IMG/VR virus record: IMGVR_UViG_3300020154_000003
Location: 62,001-126,000 of that record
Length of the DNA: 64,000 bases
Direction: 5' to 3' (one strand)
Part shown: positions 1,453 through 63,677 of the stretch, piece by piece
How positions within the stretch are numbered: the stretch's first letter is position 1
How the letters are laid out: each line of letters starts with the position of its first letter
Translations under genes and position numbers: made by a program
The notes under the pieces: generated by a model
The model's database searches: none
What the model saw: only the letters and a program-made list of their open reading frames with translations
Told to the model about the DNA's origin: nothing

Positions 1453-2991
1453 ATGAGCGAAGAATTAGCACAACCACAAATAACACATGATTACGATCCT
1501 AGATCAACGGAGGAACAAGTAACAATATACAATTGGGTAGAATATGGTGAAGGTAATTTAGTAATCAGAGCACGGGCTGGTGCTGGTAAAACAACAACAT
1601 TGGTTGAAATCGCAAAGCTATTACCTGCTGATGCTTCAACCACATTTTTAGCATTCAACGTTCACATTAAGGATGAACTTAAGACCAAGCTTCCAAAAAA
1701 CGTATTTTGCTACACCACACACGGCTTAGGATACTCCGCTATCAAGCGAAAATATAAGGATGCTGAGGTTGATAATTTTAAGGCTGATAAGGTCATTGGT
1801 AAGCAAGCTAAAAAGTGGAATCTCGATGGAATCGACAATAAGCTTGATTACATGACCAACATGAAAAAATTGGTCAGCTTAATTCGATTGTCATTAACTC
1901 ATGATAAAAAGTATGTCCCGGACATTTGTGAACGCCATGATATAAAATTTGATGGTGAAGACATTAATCGTGCATTTCAAGTACTGGAAGAAATGTATAA
2001 CGATAAGAAAACCATTGACTATGTTGATATGGTTTACATGCCTTGTGTCGATCCTAAGATATGGTTATTCCCGCAAGATTATGTACTGGTTGATGAAGCA
2101 CAAGATTTATCTCGTGCTCAACATGAACTAATCAAGAAGTGCGTAAAGAAAAATAAGGCAGGTCAGTTTATCGGTAGAATGATTTATGTGGGTGATGACA
2201 TGCAAGCTATCTACGGATTTGCTGGTGCTGATTCTTACTCATTCAACAGTCTAACCAAGATACCTAACACAATAGTACTTCCTCTCACAACTAGTTTTAG
2301 GTGTGCTAAGAACGTTATTCTGGAAGCCAATAAATTGGTTGCAGACATTAAAGCTTTACCTGATGCACCCGATGGTATTGTACGTAAGGGTAGCGTACTT
2401 ATGGAAGTTAAGGATGGTGATTTTGTCTTGTCAAGAAAGACATTTCCGTTGGTAAAATTATTCTTTGAACTTCTCGTTGAAGATCGAAAGGCGTATATTA
2501 AAGGAAGTGATATTGGAGCATCATTAATCGAGTTTACTGAAAACCACAACACGCCCTCACAGTTGGATGCTTCGCTAACGAATAAATTGGCTGAATACCG
2601 AGAAAATTTAAGAGCACATGGAGTCCTTAATTATCAAGAAGATACTCGATACGTTGCTTTAAACGATAAAGTAAAAATATTGAGATTCCTAATGGGTATG
2701 GTCGATAATGTCGCGGCCTTAAAACAAAGAATCAACTATATCTTCAAAGAAACCAGTAATGAGGGTATTGTTCTGAGTACTGTCCATAAAGCAAAGGGTC
2801 TTGAGGCAGATAAAGTGTTTATTATCATGCCTAAAGATTTACCTTTAAGAACTGGAATACCTCAACAGTACGTACAGGAATTAAATTTGAAGTACATCGC
2901 AATTACACGGGCCAAGTATGAACTTGTCTTTGATGAAGATTGGACAGTTGATGACGGTACGTTTGAAGAATTTACATTAGATCACGAATAA
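1453..2991 (+). CDS. UvrD/Rep-like SF1 helicase
   Basis: ARAGAGKTT Walker A, VDEAQD, VGDDMQAIYGFAGA, STVHKAKGLE, YIAITRAK motifs. Confidence 0.92.
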   Translation: MSEELAQPQITHDYDPRSTEEQVTIYNWVEYGEGNLVIRARAGAGKTTTLVEIAKLLPADASTTFLAFNVHIKDELKTKLPKNVFCYTTHGLGYSAIKRKYKDAEVDNFKADKVIGKQAKKWNLDGIDNKLDYMTNMKKLVSLIRLSLTHDKKYVPDICERHDIKFDGEDINRAFQVLEEMYNDKKTIDYVDMVYMPCVDPKIWLFPQDYVLVDEAQDLSRAQHELIKKCVKKNKAGQFIGRMIYVGDDMQAIYGFAGADSYSFNSLTKIPNTIVLPLTTSFRCAKNVILEANKLVADIKALPDAPDGIVRKGSVLMEVKDGDFVLSRKTFPLVKLFFELLVEDRKAYIKGSDIGASLIEFTENHNTPSQLDASLTNKLAEYRENLRAHGVLNYQEDTRYVALNDKVKILRFLMGMVDNVAALKQRINYIFKETSNEGIVLSTVHKAKGLEADKVFIIMPKDLPLRTGIPQQYVQELNLKYIAITRAKYELVFDEDWTVDDGTFEEFTLDHE

Positions 2992-27258: not shown

Positions 27259-27334
27259 TGGGGCGATGAGTAGGAGTCGAACCTACATCTGCCCGCCTCA
27301 ATGCAGGCCGTGTTACCACAACACTTCCCTCGCC
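27259..27334 (-). tRNA. atypical tRNA (His-type 8-bp acceptor, 8-nt loop CATTGAGG)
   Basis: D and T arms intact, encoded CCA, anticodon ambiguous. Confidence 0.6.
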
Positions 27335-31511: not shown

Positions 31512-31705
31512 AGTAATCGATGCGTGGTGGAATTGGTATACACTGCCTTTGAAACGCGATAAAACACATGAGCAACCAGTAAGCTGTTGTCATGATGCGC
31601 TGAGTAGTTGGACTGTCCGATGAAATCTAATCGGGCTGCGGGGGATAAACCGTGGGTTGTTTTCAACATCCAATACAGGTTCGAGTCCTGTCGCTGAAGA
31701 TTGCT
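31512..31705 (+). ncRNA. large tRNA-like RNA
   Basis: Leu-type D arm GTGGAATTGGTATACAC, T arm ACAGG-TTCGAGT-CCTGT, closing AGTAATC/GATTGCT, ~130 nt insert. Confidence 0.55.
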
Positions 31706-31895: not shown

Positions 31896-31967
31896 TGTAT
31901 GTTCGTCTAGGGGTCTAGGACACTCCCTTCATCGGGGGAAACATTGGTTCGAATCCAATACATACTC
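31896..31967 (+). tRNA. atypical tRNA (Glu-type D arm, irregular anticodon loop TTCATC[G])
   Basis: Acceptor GTATGT/ACATAC, T arm ATTGG-TTCGAAT-CCAAT. Confidence 0.55.
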
Positions 31968-33605: not shown

Positions 33606-33693
33606 CGCGGGATAGAGTAGTGGCCTAACTCGTCAGTCTCATAAGCTGAACCGTCTCATAAGGATGGCGTTGGTTCGAATCCAACTCCCGCTA
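33606..33693 (+). tRNA. tRNA-fMet-like(CAT) with extra CAT-bearing arm
   Basis: CGCGGG acceptor with C1 mismatch; GTCTCATAAG occurs twice. Confidence 0.8.
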
Positions 33694-33830
33694 CAAAATT
33701 TGTTAAACTTAAAGGTATGTATTATGGATGTCCAAAATGTGGTTCAACTCAAGTAAGTGTTCTAACAGAAAATTATTATATCTGTTTGGGTTGTAACAAT
33801 ACATGGACTGAAAATATAAAAAATAAACAT

Positions 33831-40441: not shown

Positions 40442-40529
40442 GCATCCGTGGCAGAATGGAGAATGATGCCCCACACTTTTAATGTGGACTGTCGTAAGAC
40501 TAACGTAGGTTCGATCCCTACCGGATGCA
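40442..40529 (+). tRNA. tRNA-Lys(TTT) with long variable arm
   Basis: CCACA-CTTTTAA-TGTGG plus GTC-GTAA-GAC arm. Confidence 0.8.
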
Positions 40530-40591
40530 CAAACGTAGATTTATGCGGTGAATAGAGACGCTATTCATCGCAGAATATGCGGAGATTAGTC

Positions 40592-52059: not shown

Positions 52060-52143
52060 GCCGATGTCGCATAGTGGTTGATTGCACCTGACTTGTAATC
52101 AGGAAGATAATATCTCGCGGGGGTTCGAATCCCTCCATCGGCT
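52060..52143 (+). tRNA. tRNA-Thr(TGT) with long variable arm
   Basis: CCTGA-CTTGTAA-TCAGG. Confidence 0.85.
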
Positions 52144-52159
52144 CAAGAAATTTTAAAAC

Positions 52160-52870: not shown

Positions 52871-53083
52871 ATGAAAAACAAAAGGGTTATTAAAATAAAG
52901 TTTTATGGGTTTGCCCAATTACTTACTGTCCTATTTATAGGATTGAAATTAACAGATCATATTGACTGGTCATGGTTATGGGTTCTATCCCCGTTATGGT
53001 TGCCTGCAGTAGTTGTGATTTCAATATTATTAATTATGTTTCTATTCATGTTAATTGTTGCAGCAGCTTCAAGTAGTAGATAA
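52871..53083 (+). CDS. small transmembrane protein
   Basis: LFIGLKLT..IDWSWLWVLSPLW. Confidence 0.7.
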   Translation: MKNKRVIKIKFYGFAQLLTVLFIGLKLTDHIDWSWLWVLSPLWLPAVVVISILLIMFLFMLIVAAASSSR

Positions 53084-53089
53084 ATAAAT

Positions 53090-53263
53090 TGTAGAGTGGC
53101 GAAATTGGCAGACGTTGCCCATCGGTCTCATGGGAGGGGAGCAAGAAATAAAGATGAAACAATGTTGTTTGTTGGTTGGAAATCAATAAACGGGTGGCGA
53201 AAGAAATTTTAACATTAAAGTAATCCTAATCTCCCCGTGTAGGTTCGACCCCTACCTCTACAG
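53090..53263 (+). ncRNA. tRNA-like RNA with ~95-nt variable-arm insertion
   Basis: TGTAGAG/CTCTACA acceptor, D arm, CCCAT-CGGTCTC-ATGGG, insert closed by GGGGAG/CTCCCC, T arm. Confidence 0.65.
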
Positions 53264-53277
53264 CAAAAAATACAAGT

Positions 53278-53511
53278 ATGGAAGGGCCAACGAAATTATT
53301 TTTCCCTGCAAGGGAAGAACTTCATTGTTCAGGATGTAAATATTATGATTATCATTTAGTGAAAAGTGGTCATCATCCTGTTTATGCGAAGCATTGTACT
53401 CACCCAACAGTTGAGCAATCAATGTGGTGTTTCGAAGGAAATTTACCTAAAGATGGTATCACTCCTGAATGGTGTCCATACTTGAAGAAAAATGAAAGAT
53501 CAACATATTAG
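53278..53511 (+). CDS. Cys-rich small protein
   Basis: CSGC...C...TPEWCP. Confidence 0.6.
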   Translation: MEGPTKLFFPAREELHCSGCKYYDYHLVKSGHHPVYAKHCTHPTVEQSMWCFEGNLPKDGITPEWCPYLKKNERSTY

Positions 53512-53713
53512 TAGAGCACGAGCACATTGCTCGTTATGTGATATAAATTTCGTTGCGTCTGCAACACATGAAATTTCGGTTGAAGCTGAATTGAAATCAA
53601 TTGATCAATTAAAAGAACAATTAGAAGAACATTTTATTACTTCAATGCATCAAAAAAATGTTGAAGCATTTAAGCAATACAATGAAGAAATAGTCGGGTA
53701 TATCAACGGTTAG
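53492..53713 (+). CDS. C2H2 Zn-finger small protein
   Basis: CSLC...H....H; 3' end overlaps tRNA-Ile. Confidence 0.55.
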   Translation: MKDQHISRARAHCSLCDINFVASATHEISVEAELKSIDQLKEQLEEHFITSMHQKNVEAFKQYNEEIVGYING

Positions 53714-57486: not shown

Positions 57487-57576
57487 TCTTGGGTTGCTAT
57501 AGTGGCCGAATAGTCCAGACTGTTAATCTGGTGAACGCAAGTTCCATCGCAGGTTCGACTCCTGCCCCAAGAGCCA
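57487..57576 (+). tRNA. tRNA-Asn(GTT) with long variable arm
   Basis: CCAGA-CTGTTAA-TCTGG, GAAC-GCAA-GTTC arm, encoded CCA. Confidence 0.85.
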
Positions 57577-61539: not shown

Positions 61540-61612
61540 GTCTTAGTAGCACAATTGGCGGTGCAACGATCTCTAAAATCGGAGGATGCGGGTTCGATCC
61601 CCGCCTAAGGCA
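61540..61612 (+). tRNA. amber suppressor tRNA (CTA)
   Basis: GTCTTAG/CTAAGGC acceptor; CGAT-CTCTAAA-ATCG. Confidence 0.85.
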
Positions 61613-61613
61613 C

Positions 61614-61894: not shown

Positions 61895-62674
61895 ATGAAA
61901 GCAAAAAAAACTAAGAAAACTGCTAAAACCAGCACAAAAAGACCCGCCAAGAAGAAGCCTACCGCAAAAGCAAAAGCCTCATCAAAGACCAAAGCGAAAG
62001 CTAAGGTTAAATCCAAATTGGATTATACACACATAATCGCAGTACTGGACAAATCCAGTTCTATGCATTCAGTAGCGAATGCTGCCATGAAAGGTTTTAA
62101 TGAATTCCTGACATCACAAAAAGCCTTAAAAGGGAAAGCCACTATGGACGTGTTATTGTTCAGTAGTGCTGATAAAATCGACTATATCTCGCAGGGTGTT
62201 GACATCAGTGAGGTTGCTGAATTAACCTCTGAGACTTATCGTCCTCAGGGCACTACAGCATTATTCGATGCAATCGTGAAAGCCACTTCAACTTACAAAC
62301 TGAAGTATGATGAATTGAAGCCTTCAAAGAGACCCGATAAGATTTTGGTAATTGCTATTACTGATGGAGAAGAAAATAGCAGCACAGAATTTCCTATAAG
62401 TAAAGTTGGTGATGTCAAAGCATTGATCACAAAACGTAAGTCGGAAAACTGGCAGTTTATGTTCTTGTGCTCGACTGAAGATGCCGTGTTAACTGGCGAA
62501 TCTCTTGGAGTTTCAAGAGGTAACACAATGCAGTTTACCAATAGCGATCTTGGTAATCAAGCCATGTACTCTGCTGTGGCATCTGCTGCGACCATGTACA
62601 GATCGACTTCACTGAGAAGTAAGAGTTTTAGCAAGGTCAGCGATAATTTGCTGGCTGAGGATGATATTTCCTAA
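61895..62674 (+). CDS. vWA domain protein with Lys/Ala-rich N-tail
   Basis: MIDAS LDKSSSM, GTTALFDAI, ITDGEENSS. Confidence 0.88.
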   Translation: MKAKKTKKTAKTSTKRPAKKKPTAKAKASSKTKAKAKVKSKLDYTHIIAVLDKSSSMHSVANAAMKGFNEFLTSQKALKGKATMDVLLFSSADKIDYISQGVDISEVAELTSETYRPQGTTALFDAIVKATSTYKLKYDELKPSKRPDKILVIAITDGEENSSTEFPISKVGDVKALITKRKSENWQFMFLCSTEDAVLTGESLGVSRGNTMQFTNSDLGNQAMYSAVASAATMYRSTSLRSKSFSKVSDNLLAEDDIS

Positions 62675-63585: not shown

Positions 63586-63658
63586 GAGAGTATGGCTCAG
63601 TGGTTAGAGCAAGGACTTCTAAACTCCTAGGTCGTGGGTTCGAATCCCACTACTCTCT
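63586..63658 (+). tRNA. amber suppressor tRNA (CTA)
   Basis: GAGAGTA/TACTCTC acceptor; AGGAC-TTCTAAA-CTCCT (C31:C39 mismatch). Confidence 0.75.
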
Positions 63659-63677
63659 CTCAATAAAATAAAAAGTT

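Follow-up and report, generated by a model that had tools for sequence, protein, structure and literature searches.

The analysed stretch of 64,000 nucleotides (positions 62,001 to 126,000 of IMG/VR record IMGVR_UViG_3300020154_000003, hereafter the window) carries an array of 52 tRNAs, within which a 174-base element on the plus strand (53090-53263) folds as a cloverleaf with a 7-bp acceptor stem, a 3-bp D stem, a T arm, a 5-bp stem capped by CGGUCUC and a variable arm of 101 nt. The element is composed of the following parts:

53090-53096 (+), acceptor stem, 5' strand (UGUAGAG), pairing 7 of 7 (Watson-Crick) with 53256-53262
53097-53117 (+), U8-G9, the D arm (53099-53115; stem GCG 53099-101 / CGU 53113-115, loop AAAUUGGCAGA with G18 G19) and a 2-nt linker (an extra U, then G26)
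53118-53134 (+), anticodon-like arm, 5-bp stem CCCAU/AUGGG and 7-nt loop CGGUCUC (53123-53129) with G33, GUC at 34-36, U37 and C38
53136-53153 (+), variable-arm base, 5' side: GGGG (pairs with 53233-36), bulge AGCA, AGA (pairs with 53230-32), internal-loop strand AAUAAAG
53154-53224 (+), distal, lineage-specific part of the arm, including a predicted 10-bp hairpin at 53168-53190 with a GGA triloop
53225-53238 (+), variable-arm base, 3' side: internal-loop strand CCUAA, then UCU and CCCC closing the arm, then a GU linker
53239-53255 (+), T arm, GUAGG / UUCGACC / CCUAC
53256-53264 (+), acceptor stem, 3' strand (CUCUACA), discriminator G73 (53263), then C; a full CCA is not encoded

The observation of the earlier note, i.e. 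a tRNA scaffold with perfect acceptor, D and T arms, a non-canonical anticodon loop without U33 and a long insert clamped by GGGGAG/CUCCCC at the variable arm, is confirmed by the sequence, although "perfect" is slightly generous for the D arm, as its stem contains one G.U pair. The clamp (GGGGAG 53136-41 and CUCCCC 53231-36) encloses 89 nt; the family covariation described below favors a slightly different register of 4 bp, a 4-nt bulge and 3 bp. The elbow nucleotides (U8, G18-G19, GUUCRA T loop) are those of a canonical tRNA. In contrast, neither ARAGORN at default settings nor the Rfam tRNA model (RF00005, no match at 53090-53263 even at E up to 10) called the element, and typical bacterial members of the family were likewise not matched by the Rfam model. 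When the arm was trimmed in silico to a tetraloop, ARAGORN called an 88-nt class-II tRNA with anticodon GUC. The minimum folding energy alone was unremarkable (z = -0.37); the evidence that the structure exceeds chance is based on comparison with relatives.

A homologue in a second, related phage of 371 kb (L002) is 75.6% identical and shows compensatory changes in every helix: two in the acceptor stem and others in the D stem (C-G to U-A), the anticodon-like stem (U-A to A-U), the arm clamp, the T stem (A-U to U-A) and the inner hairpin (one compensatory change, U-A to C-G, and one G.U-to-A-U change). The remainder of the distal arm did not align with relatives. Near and distant BLAST searches of the window region against GenBank phages and three exact-pattern scans of viral contigs revealed nothing beyond one related phage; the family only appeared with pattern scans of metagenomes and genomes, and with a more typical member as BLAST query. 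By these scans more than 200 distinct relatives were found, located in the chromosomes of Cytophagales and other Bacteroidota (cultured carriers include Ohtaekwangia koreensis DSM 25262, Rhodonellum psychrophilum DSM 17998, Lunatimonas lonarensis AK24 and Fulvivirga species) and in the tRNA arrays of at least four viral records. Rfam 15 lists no such family, and full-text literature searches yielded no description of it.

A covariance model search had been named in advance as a check of the element, and lack of conservation (together with lack of accumulation) as the outcome that would disprove it. The model (R1), built from 41 sequences excluding the window and its phage relative, scored the window copy at 87 bits (E 5e-22, full length 1-112), whereas the best ordinary tRNAs of the window scored 47 (Leu-CAA) and 45.5 bits (Asp-GUC), a margin of 40 bits over any ordinary tRNA. 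On a MAFFT alignment of the family, 22 of 27 pairs changed on both sides and 97.4% of cells were paired; 0 of 500 shuffles reached this value and slid controls gave about 55% paired, with the same result on 57 evenly sampled members (R-scape was not run on the full alignment). The anticodon-like stem and the T stem are 100% paired across the family, and the D stem and both helices of the arm base covary. U1-A72 was present in 55 of 56 and G2-C71 in 56 of 56 members, A51-U63 in 53 of 56; G73 and the loop positions 34-38 (GUCUC) are essentially invariant, and all these family features, including the arm base with its ANAAA/CUAA internal loop, are present in the window copy. The ANAAA motif is found in most of 206 members and CUAA in 188 of 206. 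The 3' end ...CAG is invariant; C follows the discriminator in nearly all copies, while full CCA is encoded in only 9 of 217.

The bacterial genomes contain 1-6 copies; the gene was detected in 56 of 151 genomes of one Bacteroidota order, but in only about 13 of 151 across the phylum. A divergent lrp/asnC-type gene lies within 1 kb upstream in 82 of 126 non-redundant loci (median gap of 135 nt), and also in 7 of 11 phylum-wide loci where the other neighbors differ. The Bacteroidetes -7 box is enriched upstream (71 of 217 loci against 17 of 217 in a control window), and terminators lie downstream. The phage copies, in contrast, sit inside tRNA arrays in the window's genome, in the genome G001, in the IMG/VR record L235 and in the 636-kb LR756504.1; they also occur in the array-bearing metagenome contigs L034, L024 and L047.

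Is the element a decaying tRNA pseudogene or a DNA-level element, such as a phage attachment site copied from a host tRNA-like gene? The silence of the tRNA finders and the frequent integration of phages at tRNA genes would fit this reading. However, it is contradicted by the compensatory changes that keep every helix between phages only about 75% identical, and it is regarded as very improbable. Among related phage strains, 24 differences were found in the adjacent ORF (52912-53062) but only one across 53063-53247, which is structure-preserving: a strain variant carries 53171 G>A, which turns a G.U pair of the inner hairpin into A-U. Furthermore, the element is a full-length copy and not a 3' fragment identical to that of the host, and phage and bacterial copies differ in sequence but share the structure.

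The long arm could alternatively be an intervening sequence whose removal leaves a normal-sized tRNA. Indeed, the same phage genome holds other tRNA-like genes with inserts of 50-90 nt, and at relaxed stringency (80%) the intron mode of ARAGORN can be forced to a tRNA-Met model with an intron in the anticodon loop. This model was rejected as a forced fit, as it has a poor anticodon stem and an arbitrary splice site; at default settings the intron mode found nothing. The insert is too short for a self-splicing group I intron (about 200 nt or more), no intron or ribozyme family matched it, and the arm length varies continuously from 24 to 143 nt on a conserved helical base, as would be the case for an expansion segment. 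Even with the arm removed the loop stays non-canonical. The intron reading is thus considered very unlikely. An alternative in which the inner hairpin represents the "real" anticodon arm (loop UUGGAAA, anticodon GGA) was suggested by an Rfam tRNA-Sec alignment of 17 bits (threshold 47 bits) on a different register; it was rejected because the loop differs in L002 (GGU) and the stem closes to a 10-bp helix with a triloop.

The earlier note's interpretation is supported in part. Its proposal that the element is unlikely to decode is supported, now on family-wide grounds: position 33 is U, G, C or A among relatives (G in this copy and in over 150 relatives) and position 37 is always a pyrimidine (U or C), yet the gene stays under selection. 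The loop variants of the even sample were UUGUCUC (21), CUGUCUC (18), CGGUCUC (8) and others. Its description as a tRNA scaffold carrying an arm is accurate; however, only the base of the arm is conserved and the distal part ranges from 24 to 143 nt among relatives, which argues against a tRNA-stabilised sRNA with a specific antisense or aptamer cargo. The proposed nuclease or synthetase decoy is neither shown nor excluded, and that the element is one member of a large bacterial and phage family could not be known from its sequence alone.

A genuine decoding tRNA, i.e. an extra class-II isoacceptor reading GAC/GAU and inserting Asp or another residue such as Ser or Asn, perhaps only under certain conditions, appears unlikely, but weak decoding by some members cannot be excluded, as 39 of 57 evenly sampled members have U33 with GUC. 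ARAGORN called not only the trimmed element but also, outright, the short-armed relative in L024 a tRNA-Asp, the element sits among tRNAs in phage arrays, and class-II tRNAs with unexpected anticodons exist (allo-tRNA, nev-tRNA; PMC5389517, PMC3333845). On the other hand, besides the lack of purine-37 and of a conserved U33, hosts and phage arrays already carry a normal tRNA-Asp(GUC), the element is below the Rfam tRNA threshold, and A51-U63 is a weak EF-Tu-binding pair.

A pure decoy or sponge titrating a tRNA-cleaving nuclease, a modification enzyme or a synthetase, without being charged or used as a carrier, is likewise considered unlikely. The tRNA shape, the identity-type invariants and the non-decoding loop would be compatible with it, spare phage tRNAs are thought to counter tRNA-targeting defences, and the GUC-type loop resembles the targets of nucleases specific for Tyr, His, Asn and Asp tRNAs. 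However, a vertically conserved chromosomal gene at a fixed locus with its own promoter, terminator and adjacent regulator fits a housekeeping or regulatory role better than a defence decoy; no nuclease or defence genes recur beside it, and the conserved arm base is not explained by this reading.

In comparison with established RNAs, the body is closest to bacterial class-II tRNA-Leu: the 3-bp D stem, a D-arm sequence almost identical to that of Bacteroidota tRNA-Leu (GAAAUUGGCAGAC), the long variable arm and the canonical T loop are shared, and tRNA-Leu genes are the next-best hits of the family model (about 60 bits in Bacteroidota, 47 bits in the window). The element differs by G73 instead of A73 (present in the Bacteroidota tRNA-Leu genes examined), by the absence of a Leu anticodon, by the first pair U1-A72 and by an arm of 24-143 nt with a conserved internal loop instead of a short hairpin. 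With tRNA-Asp(GUC) it shares G73, G34, U35, C36 and C38, the strong aspartate determinants, as well as G2-C71 (PMC9976931) and usually U3-A70; G2-C71, U3-A70 and G73 are also found in the host's own tRNA-Asp. In contrast to tRNA-Asp, it has a class-II body with a huge arm, U1-A72 instead of G1-C72 (present in the hosts' real tRNA-Asp), a pyrimidine at position 37 instead of a purine, A51-U63 instead of G51-C63, and neither U33 nor G10 is conserved. Of the tRNA-Ser features, G73, the long arm and (in the window only) C11-G24 are present, but position 72 is A instead of C and there is no Ser anticodon; the 7/5 geometry and the lack of a UCA anticodon also separate it from tRNA-Sec (8/5 or 9/4 stems). 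The isotype models of tRNAscan-SE were not applied.

Class-II tRNAs whose body and anticodon disagree (allo-tRNA, selC-like tRNA-Cys, nematode nev-tRNA; PMC5389517, PMC7609411, PMC3333845) likewise combine a long-armed body with an anticodon that does not belong to Leu or Ser and occur in soil bacteria and metagenomes; those have 8/4 or 9/3 acceptor/T geometry or normal decoding loops and do decode, whereas the present family has 7/5 geometry, a loop without the decoding invariants and far longer arms. The non-decoding Bacillus cereus tRNA-Other and Staphylococcus cell-wall tRNA-Gly are tRNA-shaped, processed and in part charged like tRNAs, act outside normal decoding and also carry weak EF-Tu-type T-stem pairs; they keep normal size and mostly normal anticodon loops, and none has an expanded variable arm, an lrp-linked locus or phage copies (a sequence relationship was not examined). 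Bacterial Y RNA (YrlA) and the tRNA-like domain of tmRNA also mimic the tRNA elbow and acceptor (PMC4201824), but in YrlA the RNA ends lie where the anticodon stem would be and the gene sits beside rsr, and tmRNA lacks a D stem and an anticodon arm; the Rfam models of both gave no match and the tmRNA mode of ARAGORN found nothing.

Based on these results, the element is interpreted, with good but not full confidence, as a functional RNA gene, the phage-borne member of a conserved family of tRNA-shaped RNAs with a class-II, tRNA-Leu-like body, an NNGUCUC loop and an expandable variable arm, whose home is the chromosomes of Cytophagales-type Bacteroidota. The arrangement within the phage tRNA array was demonstrated, whereas co-transcription with the array is a deduction, as are excision by RNase P and the 3' processing enzymes, CCA addition and folding into the L-shape, which would follow from the canonical acceptor, D and T arms and elbow nucleotides. 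That it does not read codons rests on an observed pattern of conservation, the U33 and purine-37 needed by a decoding loop not being conserved. The nucleotides that never vary (U1-A72, G2-C71, G73, G34-U35-C36 and C38) are of the kind read by synthetases and amidotransferases (for the role of U1-A72 in the latter see PMC9976931), and it is deduced from them that the molecule is most likely recognised, and possibly charged, by a synthetase-type protein and would serve off the ribosome as an aminoacyl carrier or as an amino-acid-responsive regulatory mimic. The conservation of the arm base was likewise observed directly, but its role as a further recognition or docking surface, with the distal arm as a freely evolving expansion, is again a deduction. 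In bacteria, the short divergent promoter region shared with the lrp/asnC-type regulator suggests amino-acid-responsive expression, although this link is synteny only; phages presumably carry the gene alongside their tRNAs to keep or control this host function during infection.

The function is unproven, and there is no evidence of expression, processing or charging: the only sequencing runs found to hold the region were the source soil sample and runs labelled metatranscriptomic, whose contigs cover ORFs and spacers alike, look like DNA and hence say nothing about RNA; raw reads of soil metatranscriptomes and small-RNA libraries were not searched, and aspartylation by AspRS was not assayed. 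The aspartate-type reading is incomplete, since G1-C72, important for bacterial AspRS, is replaced by U1-A72 and G10 is not conserved; as AspRS approaches the tRNA from the variable-loop side, a large arm might clash with it (this was not modelled in three dimensions), and G73 plus a long arm also fits seryl identity. A scaffold for tRNA-dependent asparagine synthesis is not supported, but not excluded either: the carriers have GatB, but also AsnRS and several AsnB-type synthases, so that no metabolic gap points to a need for this RNA; a phylogenetic profile of the family against GatCAB and other genes across all Bacteroidota was not made. As a more far-reaching possibility, which is speculative and rather unlikely but compatible with the data, Bacteroidota would keep a dedicated off-ribosome tRNA, lrp/asnC-controlled and derived from tRNA-Leu, that is charged through aspartate-type identity nucleotides, might be a substrate of GatCAB owing to U1-A72, and serves as an aminoacyl carrier or sensor of amino-acid supply with the expandable arm docking a partner protein; huge phages would carry their own copy to run or hijack that circuit during infection.

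tRNA-like RNAs that have left decoding are few, and each has opened a piece of biology, such as cell-wall synthesis, Ro/Y RNA quality control and trans-translation. The present family, with very clean covariation and occurrence in about a third of the genomes sampled in one bacterial order, has been captured repeatedly by huge phages and is missed by tRNA finders unless its arm is short; tRNA counts for such phages and bacteria are therefore incomplete. It offers a natural example of a tRNA scaffold that tolerates arms of 24-143 nt, a testable link between an Lrp-type regulator and a tRNA mimic, and a new marker that ties huge soil phages to Bacteroidota hosts.

With respect to the phage genomes, the ORFs flanking the element have no informative family, and the two downstream ORFs are missing in related strains; a functional linkage to them was therefore rejected. 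A crude test for TAG recoding, prompted by two CUA tRNAs, gave no signal, and no alternative genetic code was used throughout. A phage-encoded AspRS-type partner was absent from the window's genome and from G001, whereas one class-IIb core is present in LR756504.1 only.

The window spans bases 62001-126000 of a 366,038-bp IMG/VR virus record. ARAGORN detected 52 tRNA genes in the window and 54 in the genome; they cover all 20 amino acids and are interspersed with small ORFs. The tRNA-like element (53090-53263, + strand) is positioned 6 nt after a 70-aa membrane ORF of a phage family of unknown function (phrog_1374) and 14 nt before a 77-aa ORF, with tRNA-Arg genes upstream and tRNA-Ile genes downstream. 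The observation made in the earlier note, a tRNA scaffold with acceptor, D and T arms, an unusual anticodon loop and a long clamped insert at the variable arm, was confirmed in every feature:

53090-53096 with 53256-53262 (+): acceptor stem of 7 Watson-Crick pairs, followed by the discriminator G (53263); U8-G9 follow the 5' strand
D arm (+): 3-bp stem with one G.U pair, loop AAAUUGGCAGA
53123-53129 (+): 7-nt loop CGGUCUC, closed by a 5-bp stem
53136-53236 (+): variable arm, closed by GGGGAG/CUCCCC
53239-53255 (+): canonical T arm

Neither ARAGORN at default settings nor the Rfam tRNA model (even at E up to 10) reported the element. When the arm was shortened in silico to a tetraloop, however, ARAGORN called an 88-nt long-armed tRNA with the "anticodon" GUC, G33 and U37. 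The folding energy of the whole molecule was not unusual (z = -0.37); the case for function therefore rests on the comparison with relatives and not on thermodynamics.

Based on a neighboring P-loop kinase gene, two related phage loci were retrieved. One of them, a complete 371-kb record, holds a 177-nt homologue (locus L002, 8342-8518) that is 75.6% identical and lies directly after a tRNA-Ile gene. In the pairwise alignment, every helix carries at least one change on both sides that preserves the pair: two in the acceptor and one each in the D stem, the anticodon-like stem, the arm clamp, the T stem and an inner hairpin, whereas the loop CGGUCUC, the D loop and the T loop are unchanged.

Exact patterns derived from this alignment found nothing more in viral contigs. 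In contrast, a scan of metagenome contigs returned 41 loci, about 26 of which carry the same tRNA-shaped gene, often in tandem, and a scan of species-representative genomes returned at least 120 rows, nearly all with titles naming Cytophagales (Cyclobacteriaceae, Fulvivirga, Chryseolinea, Ohtaekwangia, Lunatimonas, Aquiflexum and others) and a few from Ignavibacteria bins. In total, 206 distinct sequences of 93-213 nt were collected. Lack of both accumulation and conservation had been named in the earlier note as grounds for dismissing the element, and a covariance model search as a means of examining it; conservation was addressed with a MAFFT alignment of 41 diverse members (A2) that omits the window and its phage relative. 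On this alignment the cloverleaf plus two arm-base helices is 97.4% paired and 22 of 27 pairs change on both sides; none of 500 shuffles reached any of these measures, and sliding the partners by 1-3 columns lowered pairing to about 55%. The covariance model built from A2 (R1) scored the window's element at 87 bits (E 5e-22) over its full length, compared with 47 bits (Leu-CAA) and 45.5 bits (Asp-GUC) for the best ordinary tRNAs in the window. The sequences used for R1 were retrieved with a pattern taken from the window's D loop and CGGUCUC loop, so that these two segments match by construction; the acceptor, the arm base, the T arm and all the covariation are independent of that pattern. No Rfam 15 family matched the window's copy or typical bacterial copies at any threshold, and full-text literature searches found no description of the family.

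Five bacterial carriers hold 1-6 copies each. Of 151 genomes drawn evenly from the phylum, about 13 have a match above 80 bits (the matches near 60 bits are ordinary tRNA-Leu genes), and of 151 genomes from one order, 56 have a match at E <= 1e-16. Among 126 non-redundant loci with sufficient upstream sequence, 82 have a gene for an Lrp/AsnC-family regulator (Pfam AsnC_trans_reg plus HTH) within 1 kb, always divergent and with a median of 135 nt between the two genes. In Cytophagales the suf operon lies beyond that regulator, and an AMP-binding acyl-CoA-ligase-type gene and a TerB gene lie downstream; in a phylum-wide sample these outer neighbors change, yet the divergent regulator remains in 7 of 11 loci and is therefore the neighbor most likely to be functionally linked. 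In one carrier genome (locus L189; G014:C2:1309959-1310119 and 1316125-1317510) the asparaginyl-tRNA synthetase gene lies only about 6 kb from the tRNA-like gene, which was seen once and is probably coincidence. The Bacteroidetes -7 promoter box TAnnTTTG is enriched 16-60 nt upstream of the gene (71 of 217 loci, against 17 of 217 in the next window out), and many copies have CA-rich leaders of 30-45 nt. A C follows the discriminator almost always, but full CCA is rarely encoded. The last copy of an array is commonly followed, at a distance of 4-6 nt, by a conserved trailer hairpin of about 33 nt (AGCUCAGUUUAGGUUAAUGAG...CAGAGCU; no Rfam match) and an intrinsic terminator (60 of 272 copies), e.g. 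in the bacterial loci L027 (2190-2260), L030 and L052.

An evenly sampled set of 57 members, including the phage copies, was aligned to the model. U1-A72 occurs in 55 of 56 distinct rows, G2-C71 in 56 of 56 and G73 in all, whereas pairs 3-70 to 7-66 covary freely; the anticodon-like stem always comprises 5 bp (6 in the window's subtype), and the T stem has A51-U63 in 53 of 56 rows. The loop reads UUGUCUC (21), CUGUCUC (18), CGGUCUC (8), CCGUCCC (3), CUUUCUC (2), UCGUCUC (2) and three singletons: positions 34-36 are thus GUC in 55 of 57, position 38 is always C and position 37 always a pyrimidine, while position 33, the universal U of decoding tRNAs, is U, G, C or A. The CGGUCUC type of the window is fixed in more than 150 sequences of Cyclobacteriaceae, Chryseolinea and allied groups; the gene has therefore persisted for a long time without U33.

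The variable arm always starts with 4 bp, a 4-nt bulge on the 5' side and 3 further bp, both helices being supported by covariation, followed by an internal loop with ANAAA on the 5' strand and CUAA on the 3' strand (CUAA in 188 of 206). This internal loop resembles the UAA/GAN motif of large RNAs, although the resemblance was not examined further. Beyond it, the arm is anything from a short hairpin to a branched structure of about 100 nt, with a whole-arm length of 24-143 nt (median 60). The 101-nt arm of the window is at the long end of this range, and only its 10-bp hairpin at 53168-53190 is supported by comparison.

The D arm is that of Bacteroidota tRNA-Leu, which is also the nearest canonical relative by model score; the body is therefore most simply a derivative of tRNA-Leu, but the discriminator is G where the tRNA-Leu genes retrieved have A. 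According to a review of identity elements (PMC9976931), aspartate identity rests on the five strong determinants G73, G34, U35, C36 and C38, plus G2-C71, G1-C72 and G10 in bacteria, and serine identity on G73, C72, G2-C71, C11-G24 and the large variable region; U1-A72 allows amidotransferases to accept Asp-tRNA-Asn and Glu-tRNA-Gln, while G1-C72 blocks tRNA-Asp. The invariant nucleotides of the family thus include all five strong Asp determinants and G2-C71, together with the amidotransferase-type first pair. The hosts' own tRNA-Asp shares G2-C71, U3-A70 and G73 with the family but has G1-C72, A37 and a G51-C63 T stem. Several points argue against the Asp-type reading: G1-C72 and G10 are not kept, G73 plus a long arm fits SerRS as well, and AspRS approaches tRNA from the variable-loop side, where a large arm could clash. 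Carriers possess GatB, AsnRS and several AsnB-type synthases; GatCAB is therefore available to act on such a molecule, but no missing pathway calls for it. The retention of synthetase-read positions and the loss of ribosome-read positions is the main basis for the reading that this is a non-decoding molecule still recognized by the aminoacylation machinery.

Besides the window and the related phage record G001, family members lie inside tRNA clusters of an 85-kb IMG/VR record (88.7 bits, with 5- and 10-nt spacers to tRNA-Ser and tRNA-Gly), of GenBank LR756504.1, a 636,363-bp uncultured phage (85.5 bits; the local gene order Asn, Thr, element, Arg, Arg, Ile, Met is much like the window's), and of three array-bearing metagenome contigs (L034, L024 and L047). 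In L024 the short-armed copy stands two genes away from a normal tRNA-Asp, so the array holds both. Al-Shayeb et al. 2020 report a 636-kb genome among their four largest and state that all genomes over 634 kb were predicted to infect Bacteroidetes; LR756504.1 is equated with that genome on its length only. The window's kinase gene has its best GenBank matches in the same set of huge phages. Two other huge phages, of 642 and 484 kb, lack the RNA. The RNA is thus also circumstantial evidence that the window's phage infects a Cytophagales-type host.

Contigs from other soil samples carry close relatives of this phage. One differs at 24 positions between 52912 and 53062, inside the upstream ORF, and at none from 53063 to 53140; another covers 53111-53247 with a single difference, 53171 G>A, which turns a G.U pair of the inner hairpin into A-U. 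The underlying runs are labeled metatranscriptomic, but they cover coding and spacer DNA alike and were flagged as probably DNA; they therefore give no evidence about transcription. These strains also lack the 421-nt stretch 53267-53687, which holds the two small ORFs at 53278-53511 and 53492-53713, with the result that the tRNA-like gene directly abuts tRNA-Ile.

Demonstrated by these comparisons are a conserved, structured, tRNA-shaped RNA gene family of bacterial origin with repeated capture by phages, its fixed set of invariant nucleotides, the loss of the decoding invariants, the conserved arm base with a free distal arm, and the linkage to an lrp/asnC-type gene. In contrast, maturation by the tRNA-processing enzymes, recognition and possibly charging by a synthetase (Asp-type nucleotides fit best, Ser-type second), use off the ribosome, amino-acid-responsive control by the neighboring regulator, and a benefit to phages that bring their own copy are inferred. 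The interpretation in the earlier note was partly supported: its view that the molecule is unlikely to decode agrees with the present reading, whereas a pure decoy is ranked only as a rival. Among the rivals, a weakly decoding extra tRNA is placed first, followed by the pure decoy, an excised arm and, last, a non-functional relic, which is contradicted by the covariation.

R1 detected only one strong copy in the window's genome; further unusual tRNA and tRNA-like genes of this and related phages are:

31521-31699 (+): just upstream of tRNA-Asp, a tRNA-Leu-like D arm and a good T arm separated by about 130 nt, with an insert of about 84 nt in place of the anticodon loop and a GGGGGAUAAAC stretch that recalls the family's arm base
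200526-200682 (-) and 212703-212871 (-) of the window's genome record (G000:C1), outside the window, and 1501-1647 (-) of L175 in the third related phage: tRNA-Leu-like bodies with good acceptor, D and T arms, interrupted by 50-90 nt in the anticodon region
33606-33694, 40442-40530, 52060-52144 and 57487-57576 (+): four class-I isoacceptors (Met, Lys, Thr, Asn) of 85-90 nt with long variable arms
61540-61613 and 63586-63659 (+): two tRNAs with the amber-reading anticodon CUA
27259-27333 (-) and 31896-31967 (+): two tRNA-like genes reported by ARAGORN with 6-nt anticodon loops (two-base "anticodons" tg and ca)

The first of these has an acceptor pairing of only about 3 bp, scores 23.6 bits with R1 and is not called by the tRNA finders; it may be a decayed or very divergent tRNA-like gene. 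The interrupted tRNA-Leu-like bodies lie far from the main tRNA array and may be intron-bearing tRNAs or further tRNA mimics. An anticodon CUA tRNA is also present in L002, but a crude open-frame comparison gave no sign that TAG is read through genome-wide. The extra arm of the long-armed Met gene repeats the CUCAUAA anticodon-loop sequence, and LR756504.1 likewise has 88-nt Asn and Thr genes: long arms on class-I tRNAs seem to be a habit of this phage group.
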